Below, piece by piece: positions 1 through 63,173 of a stretch of 64,000 nucleotides of DNA; positions within the stretch are counted from its first letter, which is position 1; the number at the start of each line of letters is the position of its first letter. The DNA is taken from contig NIVC01002842.1 of the NCBI GenBank assembly GCA_002269645.1, forward strand, positions 1 to 64,000, read 5' to 3'. Under the pieces are notes generated by a model. That model did no database searches. It saw only the letters and a program-made list of their open reading frames with translations, and was not told the origin of the DNA. Source of the DNA: Macrostomum lignano (lineage: Eukaryota). A program made the position numbers and the translations under genes.

Positions 1-1406
1 GGAGAATCGCAATGAGTCAGGAATGGTCAGGAAAATCGCAGCAGAGTCAGGAATGGTCAGTGAGAATCGCAATGAGTCAGGAATGGTCAGGGAGAATCGC
101 AATGAGTCAGAATGGTCAGGAGAATCGCAATGAGTCAGGAATGGTCAGGGAGAATCGCCATGAGTCAGAATGGTCAGTGAGAATCGCCATGAGTCAGGAA
201 TGGTCAGGGAGAATCGCAATGAGTCAGGAATGGTCAGTGAGAATCGCAATGAGTCAGGAATAGTCAGGGAGAATCGCCATGAGTCAGGAATGGTCAGGGA
301 GAATCGCCATGAGTCAGGAACGGTTAGGGAGAATCGCAATGAGTCAGGAATGGTCAGGGAGAATCGCAATGAGTCAGGAATGGTCAGTGAGAATCGCAAT
401 GAGTCAGGAATGGTCAGGGAGAATCGCCATGAGTCAGGAATGGTCAGTGAGAATCGCCATGAGTCAGGAATGGTCAGGGAGAATCGCCATGAGTCAGGAA
501 TGGTCAGTGAGAATCGCAATGAGTCAGAAATGGTCAGGAGAATCGCAATGAGTCAGGAATGGTCAGGGAGAATCGCCATGAGTCAGGAATGTCAGGGAGA
601 ATCGCAATGAGTCAGGAATAGTCAGGAGAATCGCCATGAGTCAGGAATGGTCAGGGAGAATCGCCATGAGTCAGGAATGGTCAGGGAGAATCGCAATGAG
701 TCAGGAATAGTCAGGGAGAATCGCCATGAGTCAGGAATGGTCAGGGAGAATCGCCATGAGTCAGGAACGGTTAGGGAGAATCGCAATGAGTCAGGAATGG
801 TCTGGGAGAATCGCCATGAGTCAGGAATGGTCTGGGAGAATCGCCATGAGTCAGAATGGTCTGGGAGAATCGCATGAGTCAGGAATGGTCAGTGAGAATC
901 GCAATGAGTCAGGAATGGTCAGGAGAATCGCCATGAGTCAGGAATGGTCTGGGAGAATCGCCATGAGTCAGGAATGGTCAGGGAGAATCCATGAGTCAGG
1001 AATGGTCAGTGAGAATCGCAATGAGTCAGAAATGGTCAGTGAGAATCGCCATGAGTCAGGAATGGTCAGGGAGAATCGCCATGAGTCAGGAATGGTCAGT
1101 GAGAATCGCAATGAGTCAGAAATGGTTAGGGAGAATCGCCATGAATCAGGAATGGTCAGGGAGAATCGCAATGAGTCAGGAATGGTCAGTGAGAATCGCC
1201 ATGAGTCAGGAATGGTCAGGGAGAATCGCAATGAGTCAGGAATGGTCAGGGAGAATCGCAATGAGTCAGGAATGGTCTGGGAGAATCGCCATGAGTCAGG
1301 AATGGTCAGTGAGAATCGCCATGAATCAGGAATGGTCAGGGAGAATCGCAATGAGTCAGGAATAGTCAGGGAGAATCGCCATGAGTCAGGAACGGTCAGG
1401 GAGAAG
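1..1406 (+). repeat. 30-bp minisatellite (GAGAATCGCCATGAGTCAGGAATGGTCAGG)n, probably intronic in TUBE1
   Basis: About 47 tandem near-identical units; a 10-aa period in the shadow ORFs (SQEWSGRIAM) confirms the 30-bp unit. The array runs off the window start. Confidence 0.95.
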
Positions 1407-1483
1407 TTTCGCAGGTGCGAGTGAATTATCATGGTTAGTTGCGATCAGGATGAGGATTCCGAGCCACAATTCCTTGTCCGCAG

Positions 1484-1802
1484 GCTCTGAAAGCTCGCGC
1501 AGTGCTGTGGACATGGAGGAGGGCGTGGTCGGCGAACTGTTGAAAGGCCGACTACGCGGTGTGTTCGATCATTCCGCGCTGATCACGGACGTGTCGGGGT
1601 CCGGCAACAACTGGGCTGTCGGGCACTGCGAATACGGCCTCAGGCACCGGGAGGCCCTGTCTGAGTCCATTCGGAGATGCGCCGAGCAGTGCGACTGCCT
1701 GCAGTGCTTCTTCCTGCTGCACTCCATGGGCGGCGGCACCGGCTCCGGCCTGGGCACGGCCATCCTCCAGCTGCTGCGGGACCAGTATCCCGAAGTGTAC
1801 AG
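1484..1802 (+). CDS. TUBE1: TUBE1 exon (GTP-binding region, GGGTGSG signature)
   Basis: ALKARAVL / VDMEEGVVGELLKG...HSMGGGTGSGLGTAILQLLRDQYPEVYR; CAG acceptor at 1481-1483 and GT donor at 1803. Confidence 0.9.
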
Positions 1803-4800
1803 GTGGGGGTGCAGTGAGCTAGGCATTGATCTGGGCCTGGTGCACAAAAACAACACCTCAAACGCAACCCCTGTACAACCTCTCCGCTAACTCAGGTTCG
1901 TCACCGCTGTCTACCCGTCTGAAGATGATGACGTCATCACTAGTCCATACAACAGCGTGCTGGCAATGCGCTGCCTGACAGACTACGCCGATTGCGTTAT
2001 GCCCATAGACAATGCCTGTCTGGCTGGCATCGCGCAGCGGGTGCAGGACTCGGGCCGCACCGCTGCCGGGTCTTCTGCTGCTGCCGGGGCTGCGGCGGTC
2101 AGTGCTGCATCGGGGCATTTGAGCTGATTTGAGTGATGGATGGGGAAGAATGAAGGCTGATCTTCATGGCTAAGGACTGGGAGGAGCCATGAAGATAACT
2201 GAGATGGTATCGGGAGAGAGCGGATAACTGAGGATTGGGAGCTGGGAGAGAGCGGATAACTGAGATGGTATTCGGAGGGAGCGGATAACTGAGATGGTAT
2301 CGGGAGGAGCGGATAACTGAGATGGTATTGGGGGAGAGCGGATAACTGAGATTGTATTGGGAGAGAGCGGATAACTGAGTTGGTATGGGAGAGAGCGGAT
2401 AACTGAGGATTGGGAGCTGAGAGAGAGCGGATAACTGAGATTGTATTGGGAGGCAGCGGATAACTGAGTTGGTATGGGAGAGAGCGGATAACTGAGATGG
2501 TATGGGAGAGAGCGGATAACTGAGATGGTATGGGAGAGAGCGGATAACTGAGATTGTATTGGGAGAGAGCGGATAACTGAGATTGTATTGGGAGAGAGTG
2601 GATAACTGAGGATTGGGAGCTGGGAGAGAGCGGATAACTGAGGATTGGGAGCTGGGAGAGAGCGGATAACTGAGGATTGGGAGCTGAGGGAGAGCGGATA
2701 ACTGAGGATTGGGAGCTGGAGAGAGCGGATAACTGAGGATTGGGAGCTGGGAGAGAGCGGATAACTGAGGATTGGGAGCTGGGAGAGAGCGGATAACTGA
2801 GGATTGGGAGCTGGGAGAGAGCGGATAACTGAGGATTGGGAGCTGGGAGAGAGCGGATAACTGAGGATTGGGAGCTGGGAGAGAGCGGATAACTGAGGAT
2901 TGGGAGCTGGGAGAGAGCGGATAACTGAGGATTGGGAGCTGGGAGAGAGCGGATAACTGAGGATTGGGAGCTGGGAGAGAGCGGATAACTGAGGATTGGG
3001 AGCTGGGAGAGAGCGGATAACTGAGGATTGGGAGCTGGAGAGAGCGGATAACTGAGGATTGGGAGCTGGGAGAGAGCGGATAACTGAGGATTGGGAGCTG
3101 GGAGAGAGCGGATAACTGAGGATTGGGAGCTGGGAGAGAGCGGAAGGATGCGTCAAGAAGCACACTAGAAAGCGCTCACTTCAACCCCAACTCCAACCCT
3201 AAGCAGAAGGACGCCAAGCCATTCGACGCGATGAACAGCATAGTGGCCAACCTGCTGCTGAACCTCACGGCTTCCGCCCGCTTCTCCGGCACGCTGAACG
3301 TGGATCTGAACGAGATCAGCATGAACCTGGTGCCGTTCCCCCGCCTGCACTACCTGCTGGCCGCGCAGAGTCCGCTGTCCCCGGCCCTGCCGCCCAGGCG
3401 GCCGGATCAGGCATTCAACGAGTCGTTCGGCAAGGAGGCTCAGTTGTTCTCGGCCGAGCCGCGATCGCATCTCTACCTGGCCTGCGCCCTCCTGCTGCGG
3501 GGTCGAATCGATCTAAGCGACGTCCGGCGCTGCGTCGATCGGCTGGGAAATCGGCTGGCATTCGCGGACTGGAATCCGGACTGCTGGAAGATCGGGCACT
3601 GCGCCGTGCCCCCGGCTGGGCAGCAGTTCGCGCTGCTCAGTCTGGCCAACAACACTGCCATTGGGGCCAGCCTGCACCTGCTCGGGGACAGGTTCAGCCG
3701 GCTCTATAAGCGGAGGGCGCATCTGCATCACTATACCCAGGCAGGTTTGCAGCTAATCTGTTTGAGTCCGCTAGGAATCTGTTTGAGTCAGCTGGGAATC
3801 TGTTTGAGTCAGCTGGGAATCTGTTTGAGTCAGCTGGGAATCTGCTTGAGTCAGCTAGGAATCTGTTTGAGTCCGCTAGGAATCTGTTTGAGTCCGCTAG
3901 GAATCTGTTTGAGTCCGCTATTAATCTGTTTGAGTCCGCTAGGAATCTGTTTGAGTCAGCTGGGGATCTGCTTGAGTTAGTTGGGAATCTGTTTGAGTCA
4001 GCTGGGAATCTGTTTGAGTCAGCTGGGAATCTGTTTGAGTCAGCTGGGAATCTGTTTGAGTCAGCTGGGAATCTGTTTGAGTCAGCTGGGAATCTGTTTG
4101 AGTCAGCTGGGAATCTGTTTGAGTCAGCTGGGAATCTGCTTGAGTCAGCTAGGAATCTGTTTGAGTCCGCTAGGAATCTGTTTGAGTCCGCTAGGAATCT
4201 GTTTGAGTCCGCTATTAATCTGTTTGAGTCCGCTAGGAATCTGTTTGAGTCAGCTGGGGATCTGCTTGAGTTAGTTGGGAATCTGTTTGAGTCAGCTGGG
4301 AATCTGTTTGAGTCAGCTGGGAATCTGTTTGAGTCAGCTGGGGATCTGCTTGAGTTAGTTGGGAATCTGTTTGAGTCAGCTGGGAATCTGTTTGAGTCAG
4401 CTGGGAATCTGTTTGAGTCAGCTGGGAATCTGCTTGAGTCAGCTAGGAATCTGCTTGAGTCAGTTGGGAATCTGTTTGAGTCAGCTGGGAATCTGTTTGA
4501 GTCAGCTGGGAATCTGTTTGAGTCAGCTGGGAATCTGTTTGAGTCAGTTGGGAATCTGTTTGAGTCAGCTGGGAATCTGTTTGAGTCAGCTGGGAATCTG
4601 TTTGAGTCCGCTAGGAATCTGTTTGAGTCAGCTGGGAATCTGTTTGAGTCAGCTGGGAATCTGCTTGAGTCAGCTGGGAATCTGCTTGAGTCAGCTGGGA
4701 ATCTGCTTGAGTCAGCTGGGAATCTGTTTGAGTCAGCTGGGAATCTGCTTGAGTTAGTTGGGAATCTGTTTGAGTCAGCTGGTAATCTGTTTGAGTCAGC

Positions 4801-5277
4801 TGGGAATCTGCTTGAGTCAGCTGGGAATCTGCTTGAGTCAGCTGGGAATCTGCTTGAGTCCGCTGGGAATCTGCTTGAGCCAGCCAGTTTGGTTCTGCAT
4901 CATTTGAGCTTTATGGATCCTTCTTAGCCACCTGAGACGATTCTGAGTCATTTCAGTAGTCTGGGATCGTTCCGGGTTACGAGTATTTCAGTAATTGAGG
5001 ATCATACAGAACTGGGTCATGTGAAATAATTATTGAGTCATGAGTAGTCAATCGGAAATATTGGTAACAATTTCGGCCTTACATAATTCTAAAATATATC
5101 TTTTCTCCGTTATTCGCTTCCTCGCCCGCGCAGGTTGACGGCTTTGAGGCCGCCACCTTCGATTCCGCATTCGCTTCGCTCAACGATCTGCGCGAGGACT
5201 ACGCAGCTCTAGAGAGGCGCCACGCGGCCGGGGCCTCGGCTGAGCCGCCTTTGCCTCGGCTGAAGATCGCCTCCTGA
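1484..5277 (+). CDS. TUBE1: Epsilon-tubulin, 3' part; exons 1484-1802, 1896-2097, 3207-3740, 5134-5277 (5' exons lie outside the window)
   Basis: The spliced translation has epsilon-tubulin-type motifs: LKARAVL-DMEEGVV, DVSGSGNNWAVGH, CDCLQCFFLLHSMGGGTGSGLGT, DDVITSPYNSVLAM, KPFDAMNSIVANLLLNLT, DLNEISMNLVPFPRLHYL, RAHLHHYTQ-VDG and the C-terminal PRLKIAS*. Splice sites are AG|GT at 1802/1803, CAG at 1895, GTCAGT at 2098, CAG at 3206, GC donor at 3741 and CAG at 5133, with consistent exon phases. One 1-nt deletion lies near 1508. Confidence 0.93.
1896..2097 (+). CDS. TUBE1: TUBE1 exon
   Basis: FVTAVYPSEDDDVITSPYNSVLAMRCLTDYADCVMPIDN...; CTAACTCAG acceptor and GTCAGT donor. Confidence 0.9.
2194..3143 (+). 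repeat. ~32-bp intronic minisatellite (GAGAGAGCGGATAACTGAGGATTGGGAGCTGG)n, with 30-31-bp variants at the 5' end
   Basis: About 30 tandem units between TUBE1 exons; the 32-aa period in the shadow ORFs equals 3 x 32 bp. Confidence 0.93.
3207..3740 (+). CDS. TUBE1: TUBE1 exon
   Basis: KDAKPFDAMNSIVANLLLNLTASARFSGTLNVDLNEISMNLVPFPRLHYLL...YKRRAHLHHYTQ. Confidence 0.92.
3755..4885 (+). repeat. 21-bp intronic minisatellite (GGGAATCTGTTTGAGTCAGCT)n
   Basis: About 53 units, giving a 7-aa shadow period (GICLSQL). It contains a higher-order duplicated block: the variant series with CCGCTATTAATC occurs twice. Confidence 0.95.
5134..5277 (+). CDS. TUBE1: TUBE1 terminal exon
   Basis: VDGFEAATFDSAFASLNDLREDYAALE...PRLKIAS-TGA, preceded by a polypyrimidine tract and CAG. 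Confidence 0.88.
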   Translation, partial: VDGFEAATFDSAFASLNDLREDYAALERRHAAGASAEPPLPRLKIAS

Positions 5278-5389
5278 GTCACAGGAGTCGCCTGAGTCAC
5301 CCGAGACTCGAGGAGTCACCTGAACCTATTGAGCCTTCTAAACTTTGAAAAATCTAGCTTTCTGAAATATGAACACGCTTGAATTTGAA

Positions 5390-6330
5390 CCATATGAACC
5401 CACTGATTCCTGAGCCCACTGATCCCTGAACCCACTGATCCCTGAACCCACTGATCCCTGAGCCCACTGATCCCTGAGCCCACTGATCCTTGAACCCACT
5501 GATTCCTGAGCCCACTGATTCCTGAGCCCACTGATCCCTGAACCCACTGATCCCTGAACCCACTGATCCCTGAACCCACTGATCCCTGAGCCCACTGATC
5601 CCTGAGCCCACTGATCCTTGAGCCCACTGATCCCTGAGCCCACTGATCCCTTAACCCACTGATCCCTGAACTCACTGATCCCTGAGCCCACTGATCCCTG
5701 AACCCGCTGAACCCTGAACCCACTGATCCCTTAACCCACTGATCCCTGAACTCACTGATCCCTGAGCCCACTGATCCCTGAACCCGCTGAACCCTGAACC
5801 CACTGATCCCTTAACCCACTGATCCCTGAACTCACTGATCCCTGAACTCACTGATCCCTGAACTCACTGATCCCTGAACCTACTGATCCCTTAACCCGCT
5901 GAACCCTGAACCCACTGAACCCATGAACCCACTGATCCCTGAACTCACTGATCCCTGAACTCACTGATCTCTTAACCCACTGATCCCTTAACCCACTGAT
6001 CCCTTAACACACTGATCCCTGAACTCACTGATCTCTTAACCCACTGATCCCTGAACCTACTGATCCCTTAACCCGCTGAACCCTGAACCCACTGAACCCA
6101 TGAACTCACTGATCCCTGAACTCACTGATCTCTTAACCCACTGATCCCTGAGCCCACTGATCCCTGAACCCACTGATCCCTGAACCCACTGATCCCTGAA
6201 CTCACTGATCTCTTAACCCACTGATCCCTGAACCCACTGGACCCATGAACCACTGATCCCTGAACTCACTGATCCCTGAACCCACTGATCCCTGAACCCG
6301 CTGAACCCTGAACCCACTGACCCATGAACC
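5390..6330 (+). repeat. 16-bp minisatellite (CACTGATCCCTGAACC)n downstream of TUBE1
   Basis: About 58 degenerate units; the 16-aa shadow period equals 3 x 16 bp. Confidence 0.92.
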
Positions 6331-7558: not shown

Positions 7559-7715
7559 CCTTTCCCAATCAACATTCATCGTTAATTTTTATGGCCAAAA
7601 ATTACGTTATTTAACTTCAACGCTACAAAATAACAAGTCTAAAACATGTTCCTTGAAGTAACCAAACTATACGGATTTTATAATACCGTTGCTTTGTATT
7701 AAAAAGCTAAAAGAT

Positions 7716-10700
7716 ATGGAAAGAAAATCTTCCGAAAAAGCTTCAAAGCAGCCGCCAGAGGAAGCAGCACCGACCAGCGCGGCTGTGACGGAGCTGATGA
7801 TCTCGAGGCTGAACAAGTTGAAGGCGTCTGGACTGTATGACGAGTCGGTGCTGACATCTGTCGGAATGGCACGGGCTCTGCTGTCGAGTGGTGCAACACC
7901 CGGATCGATGGAACGCCTCGACGGTGCGTTGGATTCTTACAAGAAGCAAGCGTCAGATAGAGACGCTCTTCTGGCCGCGGCTGTCGTTGACAAGGAAGAT
8001 GGCGTACAACCGGACGAGACTCCAAAGTCAGAAGCTCCTGCAGCTGAGGTCGAGAAGCCACAGGTTTCCACGGACGAGGTTGGAAAGCGTGTCGAGTCAA
8101 AGCAGCCGCCAGAGGAAGCAGCACCGACCAGCGCGGCTGTGACGGAGCTGATGATCTCGAGGCTGAACAAGTTGAAGGCGTCTGGACTGTATGACGAGTC
8201 GGTGCTGACATCTGTCGGAATGGCACGGGCTCTGCTGTCGAGTGGTGCAACACCCGGATCGATGGAACGCCTCGACGGTGCGTTGGATTCTTACAAGAAG
8301 CAAGCGTCAGATAGAGACGCTCTTCTGGCCGCGGCTGTCGTTGACAAGGAAGATGGCGTACAACCGGACGAGACTCCAAAGTCAGAAGCTCCTGCAGCTG
8401 AGGTCGAGAAGCCACAGGTTTCCACGGACGAGGTTGGAAAGCGTGTCGAGTCAAAGCAGCCGCCAGAGGAAGCAGCACCGACCAGCGCGGCTGTGACGGA
8501 GCTGATGATCTCGAGGCTGAACAAGTTGAAGGCGTCTGGACTGTATGACGAGTCGGTGCTGACATCTGTCGGAATGGCACGGGCTCTGCTGTCGAGTGGT
8601 GCAACACCCGGATCGATGGAACGCCTCGACGGTGCGTTGGATTCTTACAAGAAGCAAGCGTCAGATAGAGACGCTCTTCTGGCCGCGGCTGTCGTTGACA
8701 AGGAAGATGGCGTACAACCGGACGAGACTCCAAAGTCAGAAGCTCCTGCAGCTGAGGTCGAGAAGCCACAGGTTTCCACGGACGAGGTTGGAAAGCGTGT
8801 CGAGTCAAAGCAGCCGCCAGAGGAAGCAGCACCGACCAGCGCGGCTGTGACGGAGCTGATGATCTCGAGGCTGAACAAGTTGAAGGCGTCTGGACTGTAT
8901 GACGAGTCGGTGCTGACATCTGTCGGAATGGCACGGGCTCTGCTGTCGAGTGGTGCAACACCCGGATCGATGGAACGCCTCGACGGTGCGTTGGATTCTT
9001 ACAAGAAGCAAGCGTCAGATAGAGACGCTCTTCTGGCCGCGGCTGTCGTTGACAAGGAAGATGGCGTACAACCGGACGAGACTCCAAAGTCAGAAGCTCC
9101 TGCAGCTGAGGTCGAGAAGCCACAGGTTTCCACGGACGAGGTTGGAAAGCGTGTCGAGTCAAAGCAGCCGCCAGAGGAAGCAGCACCGACCAGCGCGGCT
9201 GTGACGGAGCTGATGATCTCGAGGCTGAACAAGTTGAAGGCGTCTGGACTGTATGACGAGTCGGTGCTGACATCTGTCGGAATGGCACGGGCTCTGCTGT
9301 CGAGTGGTGCAACACCCGGATCGATGGAACGCCTCGACGGTGCGTTGGATTCTTACAAGAAGCAAGCGTCAGATAGAGACGCTCTTCTGGCCGCGGCTGT
9401 CGTTGACAAGGAAGATGGCGTACAACCGGACGAGACTCCAAAGTCAGAAGCTCCTGCAGCTGAGGTCGAGAAGCCACAGGTTTCCACGGACGAGGTTGGA
9501 AAGCGTGTCGAGTCAAAGCAGCCGCCAGAGGAAGCAGCACCGACCAGCGCGGCTGTGACGGAGCTGATGATCTCGAGGCTGAACAAGTTGAAGGCGTCTG
9601 GACTGTATGACGAGTCGGTGCTGACATCTGTCGGAATGGCACGGGCTCTGCTGTCGAGTGGTGCAACACCCGGATCGATGGAACGCCTCGACGGTGCGTT
9701 GGATTCTTACAAGAAGCAAGCGTCAGATAGAGACGCTCTTCTGGCCGCGGCTGTCGTTGACAAGGAAGATGGCGTACAACCGGACGAGACTCCAAAGTCA
9801 GAAGCTCCTGCAGCTGAGGTCGAGAAGCCACAGGTTTCCACGGACGAGGTTGGAAAGCGTGTCGAGTCAAAGCAGCCGCCAGAGGAAGCAGCACCGACCA
9901 GCGCGGCTGTGACGGAGCTGATGATCTCGAGGCTGAACAAGTTGAAGGCGTCTGGACTGTATGACGAGTCGGTGCTGACATCTGTCGGAATGGCACGGGC
10001 TCTGCTGTCGAGTGGTGCAACACCCGGATCGATGGAACGCCTCGACGGTGCGTTGGATTCTTACAAGAAGCAAGCGTCAGATAGAGACGCTCTTCTGGCC
10101 GCGGCTGTCGTTGACAAGGAAGATGGCGTACAACCGGACGAGACTCCAAAGTCAGAAGCTCCTGCAGCTGAGGTCGAGAAGCCACAGGTTTCCACGGACG
10201 AGGTTGGAAAGCGTGTCGAGTCAAAGCAGCCGCCAGAGGAAGCAGCACCGACCAGCGCGGCTGTGACGGAGCTGATGATCTCGAGGCTGAACAAGTTGAA
10301 GGCGTCTGGACTGTATGACGAGTCGGTGCTGACATCTGTCGGAATGGCACGGGCTCTGCTGTCGAGTGGTGCAACACCCGGATCGATGGAACGCCTCGAC
10401 GGTGCGTTGGATTCTTACAAGAAGCAAGCGTCAGATAGAGACGCTCTTCTGGCCGCGGCTGTCGTTGACAAGGAAGATGGCGTACAACCGGACGAGACTC
10501 CAAAGTCAGAAGCTCCTGCAGCTGAGGTCGAGAAGCCACAGGTTTCCACGGACGAGGTTGGAAAGCGTGTCGAGTCAAAGCAGCCGCCAGAGGAAGCAGC
10601 ACCGACCAGCGCGGCTGTGACGGAGCTGATGATCTCGAGGCTGAACAAGTTGAAGGCGTCTGGACTGTATGACGAGTCGGTGCTGACATCTGTCGGAATG

Positions 10701-13700
10701 GCACGGGCTCTGCTGTCGAGTGGTGCAACACCCGGATCGATGGAACGCCTCGACGGTGCGTTGGATTCTTACAAGAAGCAAGCGTCAGATAGAGACGCTC
10801 TTCTGGCCGCGGCTGTCGTTGACAAGGAAGATGGCGTACAACCGGACGAGACTCCAAAGTCAGAAGCTCCTGCAGCTGAGGTCGAGAAGCCACAGGTTTC
10901 CACGGACGAGGTTGGAAAGCGTGTCGAGTCAAAGCAGCCGCCAGAGGAAGCAGCACCGACCAGCGCGGCTGTGACGGAGCTGATGATCTCGAGGCTGAAC
11001 AAGTTGAAGGCGTCTGGACTGTATGACGAGTCGGTGCTGACATCTGTCGGAATGGCACGGGCTCTGCTGTCGAGTGGTGCAACACCCGGATCGATGGAAC
11101 GCCTCGACGGTGCGTTGGATTCTTACAAGAAGCAAGCGTCAGATAGAGACGCTCTTCTGGCCGCGGCTGTCGTTGACAAGGAAGATGGCGTACAACCGGA
11201 CGAGACTCCAAAGTCAGAAGCTCCTGCAGCTGAGGTCGAGAAGCCACAGGTTTCCACGGACGAGGTTGGAAAGCGTGTCGAGTCAAAGCAGCCGCCAGAG
11301 GAAGCAGCACCGACCAGCGCGGCTGTGACGGAGCTGATGATCTCGAGGCTGAACAAGTTGAAGGCGTCTGGACTGTATGACGAGTCGGTGCTGACATCTG
11401 TCGGAATGGCACGGGCTCTGCTGTCGAGTGGTGCAACACCCGGATCGATGGAACGCCTCGACGGTGCGTTGGATTCTTACAAGAAGCAAGCGTCAGATAG
11501 AGACGCTCTTCTGGCCGCGGCTGTCGTTGACAAGGAAGATGGCGTACAACCGGACGAGACTCCAAAGTCAGAAGCTCCTGCAGCTGAGGTCGAGAAGCCA
11601 CAGGTTTCCACGGACGAGGTTGGAAAGCGTGTCGAGTCAAAGCAGCCGCCAGAGGAAGCAGCACCGACCAGCGCGGCTGTGACGGAGCTGATGATCTCGA
11701 GGCTGAACAAGTTGAAGGCGTCTGGACTGTATGACGAGTCGGTGCTGACATCTGTCGGAATGGCACGGGCTCTGCTGTCGAGTGGTGCAACACCCGGATC
11801 GATGGAACGCCTCGACGGTGCGTTGGATTCTTACAAGAAGCAAGCGTCAGATAGAGACGCTCTTCTGGCCGCGGCTGTCGTTGACAAGGAAGATGGCGTA
11901 CAACCGGACGAGACTCCAAAGTCAGAAGCTCCTGCAGCTGAGGTCGAGAAGCCACAGGTTTCCACGGACGAGGTTGGAAAGCGTGTCGAGTCAAAGCAGC
12001 CGCCAGAGGAAGCAGCACCGACCAGCGCGGCTGTGACGGAGCTGATGATCTCGAGGCTGAACAAGTTGAAGGCGTCTGGACTGTATGACGAGTCGGTGCT
12101 GACATCTGTCGGAATGGCACGGGCTCTGCTGTCGAGTGGTGCAACACCCGGATCGATGGAACGCCTCGACGGTGCGTTGGATTCTTACAAGAAGCAAGCG
12201 TCAGATAGAGACGCTCTTCTGGCCGCGGCTGTCGTTGACAAGGAAGATGGCGTACAACCGGACGAGACTCCAAAGTCAGAAGCTCCTGCAGCTGAGGTCG
12301 AGAAGCCACAGGTTTCCACGGACGAGGTTGGAAAGCGTGTCGAGTCAAAGCAGCCGCCAGAGGAAGCAGCACCGACCAGCGCGGCTGTGACGGAGCTGAT
12401 GATCTCGAGGCTGAACAAGTTGAAGGCGTCTGGACTGTATGACGAGTCGGTGCTGACATCTGTCGGAATGGCACGGGCTCTGCTGTCGAGTGGTGCAACA
12501 CCCGGATCGATGGAACGCCTCGACGGTGCGTTGGATTCTTACAAGAAGCAAGCGTCAGATAGAGACGCTCTTCTGGCCGCGGCTGTCGTTGACAAGGAAG
12601 ATGGCGTACAACCGGACGAGACTCCAAAGTCAGAAGCTCCTGCAGCTGAGGTCGAGAAGCCACAGGTTTCCACGGACGAGGTTGGAAAGCGTGTCGAGTC
12701 AAAGCAGCCGCCAGAGGAAGCAGCACCGACCAGCGCGGCTGTGACGGAGCTGATGATCTCGAGGCTGAACAAGTTGAAGGCGTCTGGACTGTATGACGAG
12801 TCGGTGCTGACATCTGTCGGAATGGCACGGGCTCTGCTGTCGAGTGGTGCAACACCCGGATCGATGGAACGCCTCGACGGTGCGTTGGATTCTTACAAGA
12901 AGCAAGCGTCAGATAGAGACGCTCTTCTGGCCGCGGCTGTCGTTGACAAGGAAGATGGCGTACAACCGGACGAGACTCCAAAGTCAGAAGCTCCTGCAGC
13001 TGAGGTCGAGAAGCCACAGGTTTCCACGGACGAGGTTGGAAAGCGTGTCGAGTCAAAGCAGCCGCCAGAGGAAGCAGCACCGACCAGCGCGGCTGTGACG
13101 GAGCTGATGATCTCGAGGCTGAACAAGTTGAAGGCGTCTGGACTGTATGACGAGTCGGTGCTGACATCTGTCGGAATGGCACGGGCTCTGCTGTCGAGTG
13201 GTGCAACACCCGGATCGATGGAACGCCTCGACGGTGCGTTGGATTCTTACAAGAAGCAAGCGTCAGATAGAGACGCTCTTCTGGCCGCGGCTGTCGTTGA
13301 CAAGGAAGATGGCGTACAACCGGACGAGACTCCAAAGTCAGAAGCTCCTGCAGCTGAGGTCGAGAAGCCACAGGTTTCCACGGACGAGGTTGGAAAGCGT
13401 GTCGAGTCAAAGCAGCCGCCAGAGGAAGCAGCACCGACCAGCGCGGCTGTGACGGAGCTGATGATCTCGAGGCTGAACAAGTTGAAGGCGTCTGGACTGT
13501 ATGACGAGTCGGTGCTGACATCTGTCGGAATGGCACGGGCTCTGCTGTCGAGTGGTGCAACACCCGGATCGATGGAACGCCTCGACGGTGCGTTGGATTC
13601 TTACAAGAAGCAAGCGTCAATGTTGACGGTTATTGGTCAGGAAAACAAGGTAACCGAGCAGCAGCGTTGGAAAGACTTAGTGGACCAGATCAACTTCTTG

Positions 13701-16700
13701 TGCTCTGTTTATCCGTCTGATTCCTTGTCTCCTATGCCTCTGGTACATGGTCTCCATAAACTGGTGGACGCTCGTCCAATGTTTTTGCAAGAGCTTCGGC
13801 CTGGCATTCGTAGCCTAGCATCCGGGGTCCAGCTTTGCCATTCGAGTTTTCTTGTGAAAGGAGTTTTACAGCAGCTACGTATCGCCAGGTCTGCCGAGTT
13901 GATCCAGTTCCTTGTTTCGCCTCTTCGTCAGACTATGGTAGAGCTAATGCGGTGTAAGTTTTGGTCATGGATCTCAGAACGGCATACTGCTGAAGTTGCT
14001 CAAATCTCATATTGGATAGAAATCGCATCGAATTCGGAGAATCAACTGTCGTCGTGTAGGAACGTGAATTTATCAGAATTTTTTAATTCGATACATCGTC
14101 AACTTGAAATTTTACATAGTAGAAGATCATATTGGCACGGTCTTCAAATATCGATGGTATCAATGAATAAATTCTTGGTTACAGATTTTTCAGCAGAATT
14201 GTCTAATTGTTTAGCCATGCTAAACAAGTACGCACTTCTAAACAGCGACATGGTACGTTTTGAACTGTCAATGAAAACTGCGATGGGCCATATCTCAGAA
14301 GCTACAGACTACTATTGTGAGGCGATCCAATGCTCTTTACTCCGGATTCCTCTTAAAAAACTCCGATATGAATTTCTAACTGAGTCAACTAGAAGCTTTC
14401 TTTATCAAGCGCCTCGTTTACTATTAACGGAGGGGTCCACTTGGAAAAAGTTTTTATCCATATTTTTGCATGCAGAGAAAGGCCTTCAGCATCAGCTCAC
14501 TAAAGGTCAAAGTGCACCAGTAGGACGACAAGCACTGGGAAGGTTCAAGCGACTACTGCATATTTACACAAAGACTTTGATCACACTAGAAACTACATAC
14601 TTTCGACCGGATTATGGCAAATACAACAAAAAACAACAGACTCACTCCCAAAAATGCTACCATTCCGAAACGAAATCGCAGACACAATAGAATTCAATAC
14701 GAACAAAAGCACGAAACCAAAAAAGAAAACGCGGCAATGAACGCGGCACTGTTTGACGCTACGATCGAGCGACTGGCGCGTCTGAATCGCATCGGACTGT
14801 TCGACGCCTCGGTGCTGACGTCGGTGGAGCAGGCGCGAGCCGCGCTGCAGCATTCAGCTAGACCCGGAGCGATGCAGCGACTGAACGCGGAGCTGGCAGA
14901 GTACAAGCGCCGCCTTGATGAGATCACCGCAGCTGAACAGGCGGAAGCTGCAGCGCCAGAACAGGAGGAGGAAGAGCCAGAAGCTGAGCCGGTCGTCGAG
15001 GACGCGGCAATGAACGCGGCACTGTTTGACGCTACGATCGAGCGACTGGCGCGTCTGAATCGCATCGGACTGTTCGACGCCTCGGTGCTGACGTCGGTGG
15101 AGCAGGCGCGAGCCGCGCTGCAGCATTCAGCTAGACCCGGAGCGATGCAGCGACTGAACGCGGAGCTGGCAGAGTACAAGCGCCGCCTTGATGAGATCAC
15201 CGCAGCTGAACAGGCGGAAGCTGCAGCGCCAGAACAGGAGGAGGAAGAGCCAGAAGCTGAGCCGGTCGTCGAGGACGCGGCAATGAACGCGGCACTGTTT
15301 GACGCTACGATCGAGCGACTGGCGCGTCTGAATCGCATCGGACTGTTCGACGCCTCGGTGCTGACGTCGGTGGAGCAGGCGCGAGCCGCGCTGCAGCATT
15401 CAGCTAGACCCGGAGCGATGCAGCGACTGAACGCGGAGCTGGCAGAGTACAAGCGCCGCCTTGATGAGATCACCGCAGCTGAACAGGCGGAAGCTGCAGC
15501 GCCAGAACAGGAGGAGGAAGAGCCAGAAGCTGAGCCGGTCGTCGAGGACGCGGCAATGAACGCGGCACTGTTTGACGCTACGATCGAGCGACTGGCGCGT
15601 CTGAATCGCATCGGACTGTTCGACGCCTCGGTGCTGACGTCGGTGGAGCAGGCGCGAGCCGCGCTGCAGCATTCAGCTAGACCCGGAGCGATGCAGCGAC
15701 TGAACGCGGAGCTGGCAGAGTACAAGCGCCGCCTTGATGAGATCACCGCAGCTGAACAGGCGGAAGCTGCAGCGCCAGAACAGGAGGAGGAAGAGCCAGA
15801 AGCTGAGCCGGTCGTCGAGGACGCGGCAATGAACGCGGCACTGTTTGACGCTACGATCGAGCGACTGGCGCGTCTGAATCGCATCGGACTGTTCGACGCC
15901 TCGGTGCTGACGTCGGTGGAGCAGGCGCGAGCCGCGCTGCAGCATTCAGCTAGACCCGGAGCGATGCAGCGACTGAACGCGGAGCTGGCAGAGTACAAGC
16001 GCCGCCTTGATGAGATCACCGCAGCTGAACAGGCGGAAGCTGCAGCGCCAGAACAGGAGGAGGAAGAGCCAGAAGCTGAGCCGGTCGTCGAGGACGCGGC
16101 AATGAACGCGGCACTGTTTGACGCTACGATCGAGCGACTGGCGCGTCTGAATCGCATCGGACTGTTCGACGCCTCGGTGCTGACGTCGGTGGAGCAGGCG
16201 CGAGCCGCGCTGCAGCATTCAGCTAGACCCGGAGCGATGCAGCGACTGAACGCGGAGCTGGCAGAGTACAAGCGCCGCCTTGATGAGATCACCGCAGCTG
16301 AACAGGCGGAAGCTGCAGCGCCAGAACAGGAGGAGGAAGAGCCAGAAGCTGAGCCGGTCGTCGAGGACGCGGCAATGAACGCGGCACTGTTTGACGCTAC
16401 GATCGAGCGACTGGCGCGTCTGAATCGCATCGGACTGTTCGACGCCTCGGTGCTGACGTCGGTGGAGCAGGCGCGAGCCGCGCTGCAGCATTCAGCTAGA
16501 CCCGGAGCGATGCAGCGACTGAACGCGGAGCTGGCAGAGTACAAGCGCCGCCTTGATGAGATCACCGCAGCTGAACAGGCGGAAGCTGCAGCGCCAGAAC
16601 AGGAGGAGGAAGAGCCAGAAGCTGAGCCGGTCGTCGAGGACGCGGCAATGAACGCGGCACTGTTTGACGCTACGATCGAGCGACTGGCGCGTCTGAATCG

Positions 16701-19700
16701 CATCGGACTGTTCGACGCCTCGGTGCTGACGTCGGTGGAGCAGGCGCGAGCCGCGCTGCAGCATTCAGCTAGACCCGGAGCGATGCAGCGACTGAACGCG
16801 GAGCTGGCAGAGTACAAGCGCCGCCTTGATGAGATCACCGCAGCTGAACAGGCGGAAGCTGCAGCGCCAGAACAGGAGGAGGAAGAGCCAGAAGCTGAGC
16901 CGGTCGTCGAGGACGCGGCAATGAACGCGGCACTGTTTGACGCTACGATCGAGCGACTGGCGCGTCTGAATCGCATCGGACTGTTCGACGCCTCGGTGCT
17001 GACGTCGGTGGAGCAGGCGCGAGCCGCGCTGCAGCATTCAGCTAGACCCGGAGCGATGCAGCGACTGAACGCGGAGCTGGCAGAGTACAAGCGCCGCCTT
17101 GATGAGATCACCGCAGCTGAACAGGCGGAAGCTGCAGCGCCAGAACAGGAGGAGGAAGAGCCAGAAGCTGAGCCGGTCGTCGAGGACGCGGCAATGAACG
17201 CGGCACTGTTTGACGCTACGATCGAGCGACTGGCGCGTCTGAATCGCATCGGACTGTTCGACGCCTCGGTGCTGACGTCGGTGGAGCAGGCGCGAGCCGC
17301 GCTGCAGCATTCAGCTAGACCCGGAGCGATGCAGCGACTGAACGCGGAGCTGGCAGAGTACAAGCGCCGCCTTGATGAGATCACCGCAGCTGAACAGGCG
17401 GAAGCTGCAGCGCCAGAACAGGAGGAGGAAGAGCCAGAAGCTGAGCCGGTCGTCGAGGACGCGGCAATGAACGCGGCACTGTTTGACGCTACGATCGAGC
17501 GACTGGCGCGTCTGAATCGCATCGGACTGTTCGACGCCTCGGTGCTGACGTCGGTGGAGCAGGCGCGAGCCGCGCTGCAGCATTCAGCTAGACCCGGAGC
17601 GATGCAGCGACTGAACGCGGAGCTGGCAGAGTACAAGCGCCGCCTTGATGAGATCACCGCAGCTGAACAGGCGGAAGCTGCAGCGCCAGAACAGGAGGAG
17701 GAAGAGCCAGAAGCTGAGCCGGTCGTCGAGGACGCGGCAATGAACGCGGCACTGTTTGACGCTACGATCGAGCGACTGGCGCGTCTGAATCGCATCGGAC
17801 TGTTCGACGCCTCGGTGCTGACGTCGGTGGAGCAGGCGCGAGCCGCGCTGCAGCATTCAGCTAGACCCGGAGCGATGCAGCGACTGAACGCGGAGCTGGC
17901 AGAGTACAAGCGCCGCCTTGATGAGATCACCGCAGCTGAACAGGCGGAAGCTGCAGCGCCAGAACAGGAGGAGGAAGAGCCAGAAGCTGAGCCGGTCGTC
18001 GAGGACGCGGCAATGAACGCGGCACTGTTTGACGCTACGATCGAGCGACTGGCGCGTCTGAATCGCATCGGACTGTTCGACGCCTCGGTGCTGACGTCGG
18101 TGGAGCAGGCGCGAGCCGCGCTGCAGCATTCAGCTAGACCCGGAGCGATGCAGCGACTGAACGCGGAGCTGGCAGAGTACAAGCGCCGCCTTGATGAGAT
18201 CACCGCAGCTGAACAGGCGGAAGCTGCAGCGCCAGAACAGGAGGAGGAAGAGCCAGAAGCTGAGCCGGTCGTCGAGGACGCGGCAATGAACGCGGCACTG
18301 TTTGACGCTACGATCGAGCGACTGGCGCGTCTGAATCGCATCGGACTGTTCGACGCCTCGGTGCTGACGTCGGTGGAGCAGGCGCGAGCCGCGCTGCAGC
18401 ATTCAGCTAGACCCGGAGCGATGCAGCGACTGAACGCGGAGCTGGCAGAGTACAAGCGCCGCCTTGATGAGATCACCGCAGCTGAACAGGCGGAAGCTGC
18501 AGCGCCAGAACAGGAGGAGGAAGAGCCAGAAGCTGAGCCGGTCGTCGAGGACGCGGCAATGAACGCGGCACTGTTTGACGCTACGATCGAGCGACTGGCG
18601 CGTCTGAATCGCATCGGACTGTTCGACGCCTCGGTGCTGACGTCGGTGGAGCAGGCGCGAGCCGCGCTGCAGCATTCAGCTAGACCCGGAGCGATGCAGC
18701 GACTGAACGCGGAGCTGGCAGAGTACAAGCGCCGCCTTGATGAGATCACCGCAGCTGAACAGGCGGAAGCTGCAGCGCCAGAACAGGAGGAGGAAGAGCC
18801 AGAAGCTGAGCCGGTCGTCGAGGACGCGGCAATGAACGCGGCACTGTTTGACGCTACGATCGAGCGACTGGCGCGTCTGAATCGCATCGGACTGTTCGAC
18901 GCCTCGGTGCTGACGTCGGTGGAGCAGGCGCGAGCCGCGCTGCAGCATTCAGCTAGACCCGGAGCGATGCAGCGACTGAACGCGGAGCTGGCAGAGTACA
19001 AGCGCCGCCTTGATGAGATCACCGCAGCTGAACAGGCGGAAGCTGCAGCGCCAGAACAGGAGGAGGAAGAGCCAGAAGCTGAGCCGGTCGTCGAGGACGC
19101 GGCAATGAACGCGGCACTGTTTGACGCTACGATCGAGCGACTGGCGCGTCTGAATCGCATCGGACTGTTCGACGCCTCGGTGCTGACGTCGGTGGAGCAG
19201 GCGCGAGCCGCGCTGCAGCATTCAGCTAGACCCGGAGCGATGCAGCGACTGAACGCGGAGCTGGCAGAGTACAAGCGCCGCCTTGATGAGATCACCGCAG
19301 CTGAACAGGCGGAAGCTGCAGCGCCAGAACAGGAGGAGGAAGAGCCAGAAGCTGAGCCGGTCGTCGAGGACGCGGCAATGAACGCGGCACTGTTTGACGC
19401 TACGATCGAGCGACTGGCGCGTCTGAATCGCATCGGACTGTTCGACGCCTCGGTGCTGACGTCGGTGGAGCAGGCGCGAGCCGCGCTGCAGCATTCAGCT
19501 AGACCCGGAGCGATGCAGCGACTGAACGCGGAGCTGGCAGAGTACAAGCGCCGCCTTGATGAGATCACCGCAGCTGAACAGGCGGAAGCTGCAGCGCCAG
19601 AACAGGAGGAGGAAGAGCCAGAAGCTGAGCCGGTCGTCGAGGACGCGGCAATGAACGCGGCACTGTTTGACGCTACGATCGAGCGACTGGCGCGTCTGAA

Positions 19701-22700
19701 TCGCATCGGACTGTTCGACGCCTCGGTGCTGACGTCGGTGGAGCAGGCGCGAGCCGCGCTGCAGCATTCAGCTAGACCCGGAGCGATGCAGCGACTGAAC
19801 GCGGAGCTGGCAGAGTACAAGCGCCGCCTTGATGAGATCACCGCAGCTGAACAGGCGGAAGCTGCAGCGCCAGAACAGGAGGAGGAAGAGCCAGAAGCTG
19901 AGCCGGTCGTCGAGGACGCGGCAATGAACGCGGCACTGTTTGACGCTACGATCGAGCGACTGGCGCGTCTGAATCGCATCGGACTGTTCGACGCCTCGGT
20001 GCTGACGTCGGTGGAGCAGGCGCGAGCCGCGCTGCAGCATTCAGCTAGACCCGGAGCGATGCAGCGACTGAACGCGGAGCTGGCAGAGTACAAGCGCCGC
20101 CTTGATGAGATCACCGCAGCTGAACAGGCGGAAGCTGCAGCGCCAGAACAGGAGGAGGAAGAGCCAGAAGCTGAGCCGGTCGTCGAGGACGCGGCAATGA
20201 ACGCGGCACTGTTTGACGCTACGATCGAGCGACTGGCGCGTCTGAATCGCATCGGACTGTTCGACGCCTCGGTGCTGACGTCGGTGGAGCAGGCGCGAGC
20301 CGCGCTGCAGCATTCAGCTAGACCCGGAGCGATGCAGCGACTGAACGCGGAGCTGGCAGAGTACAAGCGCCGCCTTGATGAGATCACCGCAGCTGAACAG
20401 GCGGAAGCTGCAGCGCCAGAACAGGAGGAGGAAGAGCCAGAAGCTGAGCCGGTCGTCGAGGACGCGGCAATGAACGCGGCACTGTTTGACGCTACGATCG
20501 AGCGACTGGCGCGTCTGAATCGCATCGGACTGTTCGACGCCTCGGTGCTGACGTCGGTGGAGCAGGCGCGAGCCGCGCTGCAGCATTCAGCTAGACCCGG
20601 AGCGATGCAGCGACTGAACGCGGAGCTGGCAGAGTACAAGCGCCGCCTTGATGAGATCACCGCAGCTGAACAGGCGGAAGCTGCAGCGCCAGAACAGGAG
20701 GAGGAAGAGCCAGAAGCTGAGCCGGTCGTCGAGGACGCGGCAATGAACGCGGCACTGTTTGACGCTACGATCGAGCGACTGGCGCGTCTGAATCGCATCG
20801 GACTGTTCGACGCCTCGGTGCTGACGTCGGTGGAGCAGGCGCGAGCCGCGCTGCAGCATTCAGCTAGACCCGGAGCGATGCAGCGACTGAACGCGGAGCT
20901 GGCAGAGTACAAGCGCCGCCTTGATGAGATCACCGCAGCTGAACAGGCGGAAGCTGCAGCGCCAGAACAGGAGGAGGAAGAGCCAGAAGCTGAGCCGGTC
21001 GTCGAGGACGCGGCAATGAACGCGGCACTGTTTGACGCTACGATCGAGCGACTGGCGCGTCTGAATCGCATCGGACTGTTCGACGCCTCGGTGCTGACGT
21101 CGGTGGAGCAGGCGCGAGCCGCGCTGCAGCATTCAGCTAGACCCGGAGCGATGCAGCGACTGAACGCGGAGCTGGCAGAGTACAAGCGCCGCCTTGATGA
21201 GATCACCGCAGCTGAACAGGCGGAAGCTGCAGCGCCAGAACAGGAGGAGGAAGAGCCAGAAGCTGAGCCGGTCGTCGAGGACGCGGCAATGAACGCGGCA
21301 CTGTTTGACGCTACGATCGAGCGACTGGCGCGTCTGAATCGCATCGGACTGTTCGACGCCTCGGTGCTGACGTCGGTGGAGCAGGCGCGAGCCGCGCTGC
21401 AGCATTCAGCTAGACCCGGAGCGATGCAGCGACTGAACGCGGAGCTGGCAGAGTACAAGCGCCGCCTTGATGAGATCACCGCAGCTGAACAGGCGGAAGC
21501 TGCAGCGCCAGAACAGGAGGAGGAAGAGCCAGAAGCTGAGCCGGTCGTCGAGGACGCGGCAATGAACGCGGCACTGTTTGACGCTACGATCGAGCGACTG
21601 GCGCGTCTGAATCGCATCGGACTGTTCGACGCCTCGGTGCTGACGTCGGTGGAGCAGGCGCGAGCCGCGCTGCAGCATTCAGCTAGACCCGGAGCGATGC
21701 AGCGACTGAACGCGGAGCTGGCAGAGTACAAGCGCCGCCTTGATGAGATCACCGCAGCTGAACAGGCGGAAGCTGCAGCGCCAGAACAGGAGGAGGAAGA
21801 GCCAGAAGCTGAGCCGGTCGTCGAGGACGCGGCAATGAACGCGGCACTGTTTGACGCTACGATCGAGCGACTGGCGCGTCTGAATCGCATCGGACTGTTC
21901 GACGCCTCGGTGCTGACGTCGGTGGAGCAGGCGCGAGCCGCGCTGCAGCATTCAGCTAGACCCGGAGCGATGCAGCGACTGAACGCGGAGCTGGCAGAGT
22001 ACAAGCGCCGCCTTGATGAGATCACCGCAGCTGAACAGGCGGAAGCTGCAGCGCCAGAACAGGAGGAGGAAGAGCCAGAAGCTGAGCCGGTCGTCGAGGA
22101 CGCGGCAATGAACGCGGCACTGTTTGACGCTACGATCGAGCGACTGGCGCGTCTGAATCGCATCGGACTGTTCGACGCCTCGGTGCTGACGTCGGTGGAG
22201 CAGGCGCGAGCCGCGCTGCAGCATTCAGCTAGACCCGGAGCGATGCAGCGACTGAACGCGGAGCTGGCAGAGTACAAGCGCCGCCTTGATGAGATCACCG
22301 CAGCTGAACAGGCGGAAGCTGCAGCGCCAGAACAGGAGGAGGAAGAGCCAGAAGCTGAGCCGGTCGTCGAGGACGCGGCAATGAACGCGGCACTGTTTGA
22401 CGCTACGATCGAGCGACTGGCGCGTCTGAATCGCATCGGACTGTTCGACGCCTCGGTGCTGACGTCGGTGGAGCAGGCGCGAGCCGCGCTGCAGCATTCA
22501 GCTAGACCCGGAGCGATGCAGCGACTGAACGCGGAGCTGGCAGAGTACAAGCGCCGCCTTGATGAGATCACCGCAGCTGAACAGGCGGAAGCTGCAGCGC
22601 CAGAACAGGAGGAGGAAGAGCCAGAAGCTGAGCCGGTCGTCGAGGACGCGGCAATGAACGCGGCACTGTTTGACGCTACGATCGAGCGACTGGCGCGTCT

Positions 22701-25700
22701 GAATCGCATCGGACTGTTCGACGCCTCGGTGCTGACGTCGGTGGAGCAGGCGCGAGCCGCGCTGCAGCATTCAGCTAGACCCGGAGCGATGCAGCGACTG
22801 AACGCGGAGCTGGCAGAGTACAAGCGCCGCCTTGATGAGATCACCGCAGCTGAACAGGCGGAAGCTGCAGCGCCAGAACAGGAGGAGGAAGAGCCAGAAG
22901 CTGAGCCGGTCGTCGAGGACGCGGCAATGAACGCGGCACTGTTTGACGCTACGATCGAGCGACTGGCGCGTCTGAATCGCATCGGACTGTTCGACGCCTC
23001 GGTGCTGACGTCGGTGGAGCAGGCGCGAGCCGCGCTGCAGCATTCAGCTAGACCCGGAGCGATGCAGCGACTGAACGCGGAGCTGGCAGAGTACAAGCGC
23101 CGCCTTGATGAGATCACCGCAGCTGAACAGGCGGAAGCTGCAGCGCCAGAACAGGAGGAGGAAGAGCCAGAAGCTGAGCCGGTCGTCGAGGACGCGGCAA
23201 TGAACGCGGCACTGTTTGACGCTACGATCGAGCGACTGGCGCGTCTGAATCGCATCGGACTGTTCGACGCCTCGGTGCTGACGTCGGTGGAGCAGGCGCG
23301 AGCCGCGCTGCAGCATTCAGCTAGACCCGGAGCGATGCAGCGACTGAACGCGGAGCTGGCAGAGTACAAGCGCCGCCTTGATGAGATCACCGCAGCTGAA
23401 CAGGCGGAAGCTGCAGCGCCAGAACAGGAGGAGGAAGAGCCAGAAGCTGAGCCGGTCGTCGAGGACGCGGCAATGAACGCGGCACTGTTTGACGCTACGA
23501 TCGAGCGACTGGCGCGTCTGAATCGCATCGGACTGTTCGACGCCTCGGTGCTGACGTCGGTGGAGCAGGCGCGAGCCGCGCTGCAGCATTCAGCTAGACC
23601 CGGAGCGATGCAGCGACTGAACGCGGAGCTGGCAGAGTACAAGCGCCGCCTTGATGAGATCACCGCAGCTGAACAGGCGGAAGCTGCAGCGCCAGAACAG
23701 GAGGAGGAAGAGCCAGAAGCTGAGCCGGTCGTCGAGGACGCGGCAATGAACGCGGCACTGTTTGACGCTACGATCGAGCGACTGGCGCGTCTGAATCGCA
23801 TCGGACTGTTCGACGCCTCGGTGCTGACGTCGGTGGAGCAGGCGCGAGCCGCGCTGCAGCATTCAGCTAGACCCGGAGCGATGCAGCGACTGAACGCGGA
23901 GCTGGCAGAGTACAAGCGCCGCCTTGATGAGATCACCGCAGCTGAACAGGCGGAAGCTGCAGCGCCAGAACAGGAGGAGGAAGAGCCAGAAGCTGAGCCG
24001 GTCGTCGAGGACGCGGCAATGAACGCGGCACTGTTTGACGCTACGATCGAGCGACTGGCGCGTCTGAATCGCATCGGACTGTTCGACGCCTCGGTGCTGA
24101 CGTCGGTGGAGCAGGCGCGAGCCGCGCTGCAGCATTCAGCTAGACCCGGAGCGATGCAGCGACTGAACGCGGAGCTGGCAGAGTACAAGCGCCGCCTTGA
24201 TGAGATCACCGCAGCTGAACAGGCGGAAGCTGCAGCGCCAGAACAGGAGGAGGAAGAGCCAGAAGCTGAGCCGGTCGTCGAGGACGCGGCAATGAACGCG
24301 GCACTGTTTGACGCTACGATCGAGCGACTGGCGCGTCTGAATCGCATCGGACTGTTCGACGCCTCGGTGCTGACGTCGGTGGAGCAGGCGCGAGCCGCGC
24401 TGCAGCATTCAGCTAGACCCGGAGCGATGCAGCGACTGAACGCGGAGCTGGCAGAGTACAAGCGCCGCCTTGATGAGATCACCGCAGCTGAACAGGCGGA
24501 AGCTGCAGCGCCAGAACAGGAGGAGGAAGAGCCAGAAGCTGAGCCGGTCGTCGAGGACGCGGCAATGAACGCGGCACTGTTTGACGCTACGATCGAGCGA
24601 CTGGCGCGTCTGAATCGCATCGGACTGTTCGACGCCTCGGTGCTGACGTCGGTGGAGCAGGCGCGAGCCGCGCTGCAGCATTCAGCTAGACCCGGAGCGA
24701 TGCAGCGACTGAACGCGGAGCTGGCAGAGTACAAGCGCCGCCTTGATGAGATCACCGCAGCTGAACAGGCGGAAGCTGCAGCGCCAGAACAGGAGGAGGA
24801 AGAGCCAGAAGCTGAGCCGGTCGTCGAGGACGCGGCAATGAACGCGGCACTGTTTGACGCTACGATCGAGCGACTGGCGCGTCTGAATCGCATCGGACTG
24901 TTCGACGCCTCGGTGCTGACGTCGGTGGAGCAGGCGCGAGCCGCGCTGCAGCATTCAGCTAGACCCGGAGCGATGCAGCGACTGAACGCGGAGCTGGCAG
25001 AGTACAAGCGCCGCCTTGATGAGATCACCGCAGCTGAACAGGCGGAAGCTGCAGCGCCAGAACAGGAGGAGGAAGAGCCAGAAGCTGAGCCGGTCGTCGA
25101 GGACGCGGCAATGAACGCGGCACTGTTTGACGCTACGATCGAGCGACTGGCGCGTCTGAATCGCATCGGACTGTTCGACGCCTCGGTGCTGACGTCGGTG
25201 GAGCAGGCGCGAGCCGCGCTGCAGCATTCAGCTAGACCCGGAGCGATGCAGCGACTGAACGCGGAGCTGGCAGAGTACAAGCGCCGCCTTGATGAGATCA
25301 CCGCAGCTGAACAGGCGGAAGCTGCAGCGCCAGAACAGGAGGAGGAAGAGCCAGAAGCTGAGCCGGTCGTCGAGGACGCGGCAATGAACGCGGCACTGTT
25401 TGACGCTACGATCGAGCGACTGGCGCGTCTGAATCGCATCGGACTGTTCGACGCCTCGGTGCTGACGTCGGTGGAGCAGGCGCGAGCCGCGCTGCAGCAT
25501 TCAGCTAGACCCGGAGCGATGCAGCGACTGAACGCGGAGCTGGCAGAGTACAAGCGCCGCCTTGATGAGATCACCGCAGCTGAACAGGCGGAAGCTGCAG
25601 CGCCAGAACAGGAGGAGGAAGAGCCAGAAGCTGAGCCGGTCGTCGAGGACGCGGCAATGAACGCGGCACTGTTTGACGCTACGATCGAGCGACTGGCGCG

Positions 25701-35513: not shown

Positions 35514-35771
35514 NNNNNNNNNNNNNNNNNNNNNNNNNNNNNNNNNNNNNNNNNNNNNNNNNNNNNNNNNNNNNNNNNNNNNNNNNNNNNNNNNNNNNNN
35601 NNNNNNNNNNNNNNNNNNNNNNNNNNNNNNNNNNNNNNNNNNNNNNNNNNNNNNNNNNNNNNNNNNNNNNNNNNNNNNNNNNNNNNNNNNNNNNNNNNNN
35701 NNNNNNNNNNNNNNNNNNNNNNNNNNNNNNNNNNNNNNNNNNNNNNNNNNNNNNNNNNNNNNNNNNNNNNN
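35514..35771. other. Assembly gap (258 N)
   Basis: Run of N. Confidence 1.
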
Positions 35772-41512: not shown

Positions 41513-41786
<274 letters not shown>

Positions 41787-63148: not shown

Positions 63149-63173
63149 GTAAGACTGCAGTTGCTGTGTCAGC

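Follow-up and report, generated by a model that had tools for sequence, protein, structure and literature searches.

Residual indel errors in uncorrected PacBio CLR or nanopore assemblies are reportedly able to split open reading frames, as Watson and Warr are said to have described in 2019. Two long reading frames that overlap in a -1 relation are likewise known from genes with programmed ribosomal frameshifting, in which a slippery heptamer and a stable downstream RNA are looked for at each shift together with conservation of the arrangement in relatives, and tandem arrays of three-helix units of about 100 amino acids characterize the spectrin-repeat proteins, such as nesprins and plakins. 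We have analysed a stretch of 64,000 nucleotides of the flatworm Macrostomum lignano (the window; contig NIVC01002842.1, positions 1 to 64,000) that invites comparison with each of these systems. On its plus strand, from an ATG at 7716 to 35513, where a scaffold gap follows, we read one giant protein-coding gene, which in this broken copy would comprise about 9,266 codons and whose 3' end, lying outside the window, would be lost in the gap. The breaks that interrupt its reading frame are, with good confidence on the comparison of assembled copies, uncorrected long-read deletion errors. The locus shares with uncorrected long-read assemblies the single-base, deletion-biased gaps at base runs that are private to one assembled copy, their greater density near contig ends and gaps, and a multi-copy setting with weak short-read polishing; it differs in that one of the seven gaps in its non-repetitive parts does not fall in a run, and in that the diagnosis comes here from assembled copies alone.

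The assembly to which the window belongs (GCA_002269645.1, Mlig_3_7) was built from PacBio data with Canu 1.4, polished by Pilon with Illumina and RNA-seq reads and scaffolded with SSPACE, and 180 Mb of its non-repetitive blocks are duplicated at 95% identity or more (PMC5730564). The PacBio data are of the CLR type, and this combination of CLR reads, Canu 1.4, Pilon and extensive duplication makes leftover indel errors something to be expected. Each discordant base was judged by comparison of the assembled copies of the locus, two of which lie on other contigs of the same assembly: NIVC01002841.1 (hereafter L002) and NIVC01000838.1 (L003). The 90% cluster of the window's protein includes one deposited protein from each, PAA54916.1 (Mlig011518g1, from L002) and PAA76189.1 (Mlig011518g3, from L003), a shared gene-name prefix denoting transcripts clustered at 95% identity (PMC5730564).

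The gene is predicted to run from its start codon through array 1, linker A, array 2, linker B and array 3 to a C-terminal tail. The ATG at 7716 stands in the frame of the first listed open reading frame (ORF1), behind an in-frame stop and 27 bases before array 1, and is also present in L002 and L003. Array 1 (7743 to 13619, plus strand, as are all elements of the gene) holds 16.6 copies of a 354-bp unit (118 amino acids) that are 100% identical and in frame throughout, and array 2 (14729 to 27524) holds 46.9 copies of a 273-bp unit (91 amino acids), 99% identical and likewise in frame throughout. Array 3 (28656 to 35513) contains at least 23 units of nominally 294 bp (98 amino acids), with 98% identity, 1% indels and a computed nominal period of 289 bp in the window, and it is followed directly by the run of 258 N that represents the scaffold gap (35514 to 35771). 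Indel noise is thus uneven, since the same contig has no indels in arrays 1 and 2. All three types of unit are homologous, their shared core of about 60 residues being 36-37% identical. Between the arrays lie non-repetitive linkers of about 1.1 kb each: linker A (13620 to 14728; about 370 amino acids, basic and helical), which holds the junction flagged in the earlier note, and linker B (27525 to 28655), the last part of which reads unbroken into array 3. No similarity between the two linkers was found at the DNA level, so that their homology is confined to the protein level. The window copy carries two breaks at the end of linker A, two more in linker B and 11 or more in array 3; all are frameshifts from small indels, and no stop created by substitution was seen in either linker. 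On the opposite strand, the ORFs at 7699 to 13620 (minus, 1,973 amino acids) and 14694 to 27542 (minus, 4,282 amino acids) mirror the arrays and are most simply taken, instead of as genes, as reverse frames that lack stops in a GC-rich repeated unit. Beyond the 258-N gap the sequence is unrelated to the C-terminal tail of L003, which is absent from the window; the SSPACE join has therefore either left out the gene's 3' end or linked unrelated contigs.

The junction between ORF1 and the second listed frame (ORF2), at 14580 to 14740, had been proposed to conceal a third frame (frame 2, with codon starts at 2 mod 3) whose peptide would bridge the two. This peptide (14585 to 14677, in the C-terminal part of linker A) does read as quoted to 14677, except that its first residue is encoded at 14585 and not at 14582, the latter codon specifying the preceding residue. 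Its supposed counterpart, called 'U2', could be located in linker B, in the frame of the ORF 28085 to 29503, and the match between the two was borne out: by BLASTP the frame-2 piece 14504 to 14737 aligns with the corresponding piece of linker B at 21 of 58 identical positions and no gaps (E 5e-11), and the 31 residues from 14582, 30 of which are those quoted earlier, reach a local score of 77 against linker B, compared with 22.3 +/- 3.9 for shuffled sequences, none of 5000 shuffles attaining that value. Read in the two remaining frames, these bases give scores of 20 and 18. Upstream of the interval it is ORF1's frame that aligns with the linker-B protein (36 identities in 132 positions, E 2e-17, and a second block at E 1e-5). 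Linker-B homology thus follows the path from ORF1's frame through frame 2 into ORF2's frame that had been suggested, with both shifts of the same sign (-1). Across the first shift the alignment to linker B is gap-free and therefore leaves no room for an intron, and the deposited proteins PAA54916.1 and PAA76189.1 continue straight through this break. As to the exact sites, the proposed positions at about 14586 and at the A-runs of about 14718 to 14728 proved to be nearby, but judged against the other copies both are slightly displaced, and the second does not lie in the A-runs.

The three-way alignment of the linker-A region (1,601 columns, from the last unit of array 1 across linker A to the first unit of array 2) bears directly on these breaks. 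Private one-base gaps number two in the window, three in L003 and none in L002; each of the five makes a run of identical bases one shorter, and insertions are absent. Exactly one missing base per break, as had been claimed, is therefore what the window displays over these 1.6 kb. A stop-free frame through the region exists in L002, for all 534 codons, and in neither the window nor L003, so that ORF1 and ORF2 form a single reading path there; this in-frame copy also supports the view that the listed tail of ORF1 and the ATG at 14614 are artefacts of ORF listing. The reading of one ORF cut by missing bases, of the type left by assembly error, is thus supported, as far as assembled sequences can tell. 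L002 and L003 differ in this alignment by a single substitution but by three frameshifting gaps, a proportion that real divergence does not readily explain. The window has eight private substitutions in the 1,601 columns (0.5%), five synonymous and three non-synonymous, compared with a rate of about 0.9% in the upstream non-coding DNA (8 in 863 columns); it is thus a distinct copy that still looks constrained.

Similar observations were made outside linker A. Over linker B, the window and L003 differ in 1,363 columns by one substitution and two one-base gaps, both in the window, and in L003 an ORF from 10837 to 20868 takes in array 2, linker B, array 3, a 153-residue tail and the stop codon in one frame. 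Discrepancies private to the window are hence faced by a near-identical open copy in each linker, L002 across linker A and L003 across linker B. Over all copies, the seven linker gaps are without exception one-base deletions private to one copy, six of them shortening a base run. The non-coding DNA upstream of the ATG in L002, which lies within about 2 kb of a contig end, contains five private one-base deletions, one 7-base deletion and one insertion in 863 columns. Summed over the three alignments, 13 private one-base deletions (11 in runs of two or more) stand against one insertion. In the window, the units of array 3 measure 287 to 294 bp and never more than 294; the 23 units contain 27 gap blocks, and the frame undergoes a net change at least 11 times. 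Array 3 of L003 shows a clean 294-bp period over 11.7 units with 0% indels. No internal plus-strand ORF of 150 amino acids or more was found in L002, as is expected if a single ORF extends there from the ATG past the end of the locus.

The copies differ widely in the number of their repeats. Array 1 has 16.6 units in the window, 25.6 in L002 (1595 to 10654) and 19.6 in L003 (2907 to 9842); array 2 has 46.9 in the window, at least 36.5 in L002 (11766 to 21740) and 17.9, at the same 273-bp period, in L003 (10952 to 15848); and for array 3 the figures are at least 23.6 (window) and 11.7 (L003, 16982 to 20408), the units within an array being 99-100% identical in the assembled copies. These differences reflect either real variation with strong homogenization or collapse during assembly.

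Were the frameshifts real, the window copy would be a recently pseudogenised duplicate whose counterparts had stayed functional after whole-genome duplication, an account to which we assign a small probability. M. lignano is a recent hidden polyploid (PMC10468722) and, with the redundant copies left by recent duplication and an unstable karyotype (PMC10468722, PMC5730564), it is a species in which one copy could truly be decaying; moreover, the window copy is made distinct by its eight private substitutions in 1.6 kb. That one of three near-identical copies is being lost, its decay beginning with one-base deletions at domain junctions and in array 3, nevertheless seems to us rather improbable, given that L003, a single substitution away from L002, carries three different private one-base deletions of the same kind, that such deletions occur also in non-coding DNA of L002 near its contig end, and that the excess of deletions over insertions, mostly in runs, extends to all copies. 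The signs of a pseudogene amount to deletions alone, with no stop by substitution and a synonymous to non-synonymous ratio of 5:3, small numbers that come from assembled copies only, and the frame changes of array 3, at least 11, are concentrated beside the scaffold gap. Three observations count on the other side as counterpoints to sequencing error: the breaks outlasted Pilon polishing with genomic and RNA-seq reads, one of the seven linker gaps is situated outside runs of identical bases, and the noise is uneven along the contig, sparing arrays 1 and 2. Explanations that accept the assembled bases and call on recoding, introns or separate genes are, even when taken together, very improbable. 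Programmed -1 ribosomal frameshifting, by which the frames would be joined during translation, could appeal to the common -1 sign of both steps, to the overlap of two long ORFs in that relation and to an A-rich heptamer of the classical slippery form that lies near the end of the interval in the incoming frame. In contrast to known sites of this kind, even copies that are 99.5% or more identical do not share the arrangement, L002 being in frame and needing no shift and L003 being broken elsewhere; a heptamer is found near only one of the two steps, the first in order being without one; and a stimulatory structure is missing, since past the A-rich site the RNA is no more prone to folding than shuffled sequences (z +0.95) and past the first step it forms weak structure only (-9.9 kcal/mol). 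On these grounds programmed frameshifting was rejected, and we regard it as the least probable of all the accounts weighed here. Scarcely more credible is the view that ORF1 and ORF2 are separate genes, either tandem paralogues or parts of a trans-spliced polycistron, or that very short introns bridge their frames. The deposited annotation does divide the locus into the gene models Mlig011518, Mlig002418 and Mlig027191, polycistronic trans-spliced units do occur in M. lignano (PMC5730564), and every array-2 unit offers an in-frame ATG. However, the window itself is continuous from array 1 into linker A and from array 2 into linker B and unbroken from linker B into array 3, both junctions of linker A with its arrays are continuous in L002 and those of linker B in L003, no intergenic space exists, and the deposited models are flagged as partial. 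Because at least one copy reads continuously through each junction between an array and a linker, and because no gap interrupts the alignment to linker B at the first step, separate genes and tiny introns are contradicted; the intron model was rejected for this gap-free alignment and for the continuous ORF of L002.

Residual error in the long-read consensus is preferred over these accounts because the gaps are private, single-base, almost all deletions and mostly at base runs, and because they are denser near contig ends and the scaffold gap in a locus present in three copies. The interval 14580 to 14740 would then be the C-terminal end of a linker domain within a single very large gene, and its two frame changes would be single-base deletion errors left in the PacBio-CLR/Canu consensus. 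Pilon may have been unable to correct them, given that short reads would map ambiguously to three copies at 99.5% identity or more. The true transcript would run in one frame, the listed tail of ORF1 and the start of ORF2 being mere by-products of the missing bases. The homology path, the open frames of the other copies and the kind and sign of every discordant indel are observations; we infer that errors, and not mutations, underlie the discordances and that multi-mapping lies behind the failure of Pilon.

The protein thus restored is predicted to comprise three related arrays, with about 90 almost identical three-helix units in all, separated by two homologous linkers. The arrays are acidic (pI 4.4-4.6, 18-21% D+E and 14-23% A), linker A is basic (pI 9.4), and the N-terminus shows no hydrophobic signal. 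AlphaFold modelled three array-2 units at a pLDDT of 74, with three helices in each 91-residue unit (pLDDT 75-91) and, after them, an acidic spacer of about 16 residues that is disordered; the all-helical prediction for linker A, with a pLDDT of 42, is unusable. Like the spectrin-repeat proteins, the putative product has tandem arrays of units of 91 to 118 amino acids, three predicted helices per unit and weak Pfam hints to Spectrin and Spectrin_SYNE1_2. It differs from them in that Spectrin (PF00435) scores 19.4 bits against a gathering score of 29.9 and all Pfam matches stay below gathering, in that its units are 99-100% identical to each other, and in that known terminal domains, such as actin-binding or KASH, were not found. 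Searches of Pfam and NCBIfam gave sub-threshold noise only (best Pfam scores 19-20 bits), Foldseek returned nothing at E <= 0.001 for the array-2 model against PDB structures, and the PDB sequence search gave 0 matches. With neither a Pfam score above gathering nor a significant structural match, membership of the spectrin family is not demonstrable. Matches outside this locus were found neither among 5.8 billion clustered proteins by k-mer and HMMER searches, which also returned no Illumina-derived (Logan) protein of this locus, nor among 1.84 billion representatives by full phmmer, and literature and supplement searches for the identifiers Mlig011518, Mlig002418 and Mlig027191 found nothing. 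The protein appears, by sequence searching, to have no detectable relatives outside M. lignano. It presumably behaves as a beads-on-a-string helical repeat protein with an intracellular and structural role. M. lignano has large secreted adhesive proteins; an identity with one of these was considered but seems unlikely, since the protein is acidic and lacks a signal peptide. A scan for bacterial promoters and terminators was set aside as irrelevant to a flatworm gene.

Several other features of the window deserve mention. Upstream of the locus, at 1504 to 5277 on the plus strand, lies a divergent gene of the tubulin family (the TUBE1 of the earlier note), whose exons are separated by minisatellite-filled introns and whose last exon ends at a stop codon at 5275 to 5277. 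In the PDB it is matched best by alpha, beta and Asgard tubulins (about 1e-27), and the Pfam domains Tubulin and Tubulin_C are recorded for its copy in L003. The introns carry minisatellites of 30, 32 and 21 bp, and the inspected exons are in frame. Minisatellites are unusually dense at 1 to 6330, 41510 to 49363, 54641 to 55879 and 63158 to 63983, their periods ranging from 4 to 75 bp and their copy numbers from 6 to 70; simple and tandem repeats make up 15% of the M. lignano assembly (PMC5730564), a figure with which this density fits. A short ORF at 60923 to 61198 (minus strand) contains a motif rich in cysteine and histidine that, on visual inspection, is reminiscent of the C-terminal region of retroelement proteins.

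Concerning the annotation, Mlig011518, Mlig002418 and Mlig027191, deposited as partial 'hypothetical proteins', are one gene; the division is seen from 28331 onward in the window (PAA54910.1, Mlig002418g1) and at 15349 to 19848 in L003. The 470-residue model in the window fits no single frame and, not being collinear with any, itself steps over a break. The breaks are most probably absent from the animal and not a real feature of its genome. In themselves they carry no biology, and they call for caution over individual bases of Mlig_3_7 wherever the sequence is multi-copy or rich in repeats. As a by-product, their analysis yields a corrected gene model of at least 9,266 codons in this copy which, although unsurprising in itself, is relevant to the annotation of the Macrostomum genome and to the concerted evolution of coding repeats.
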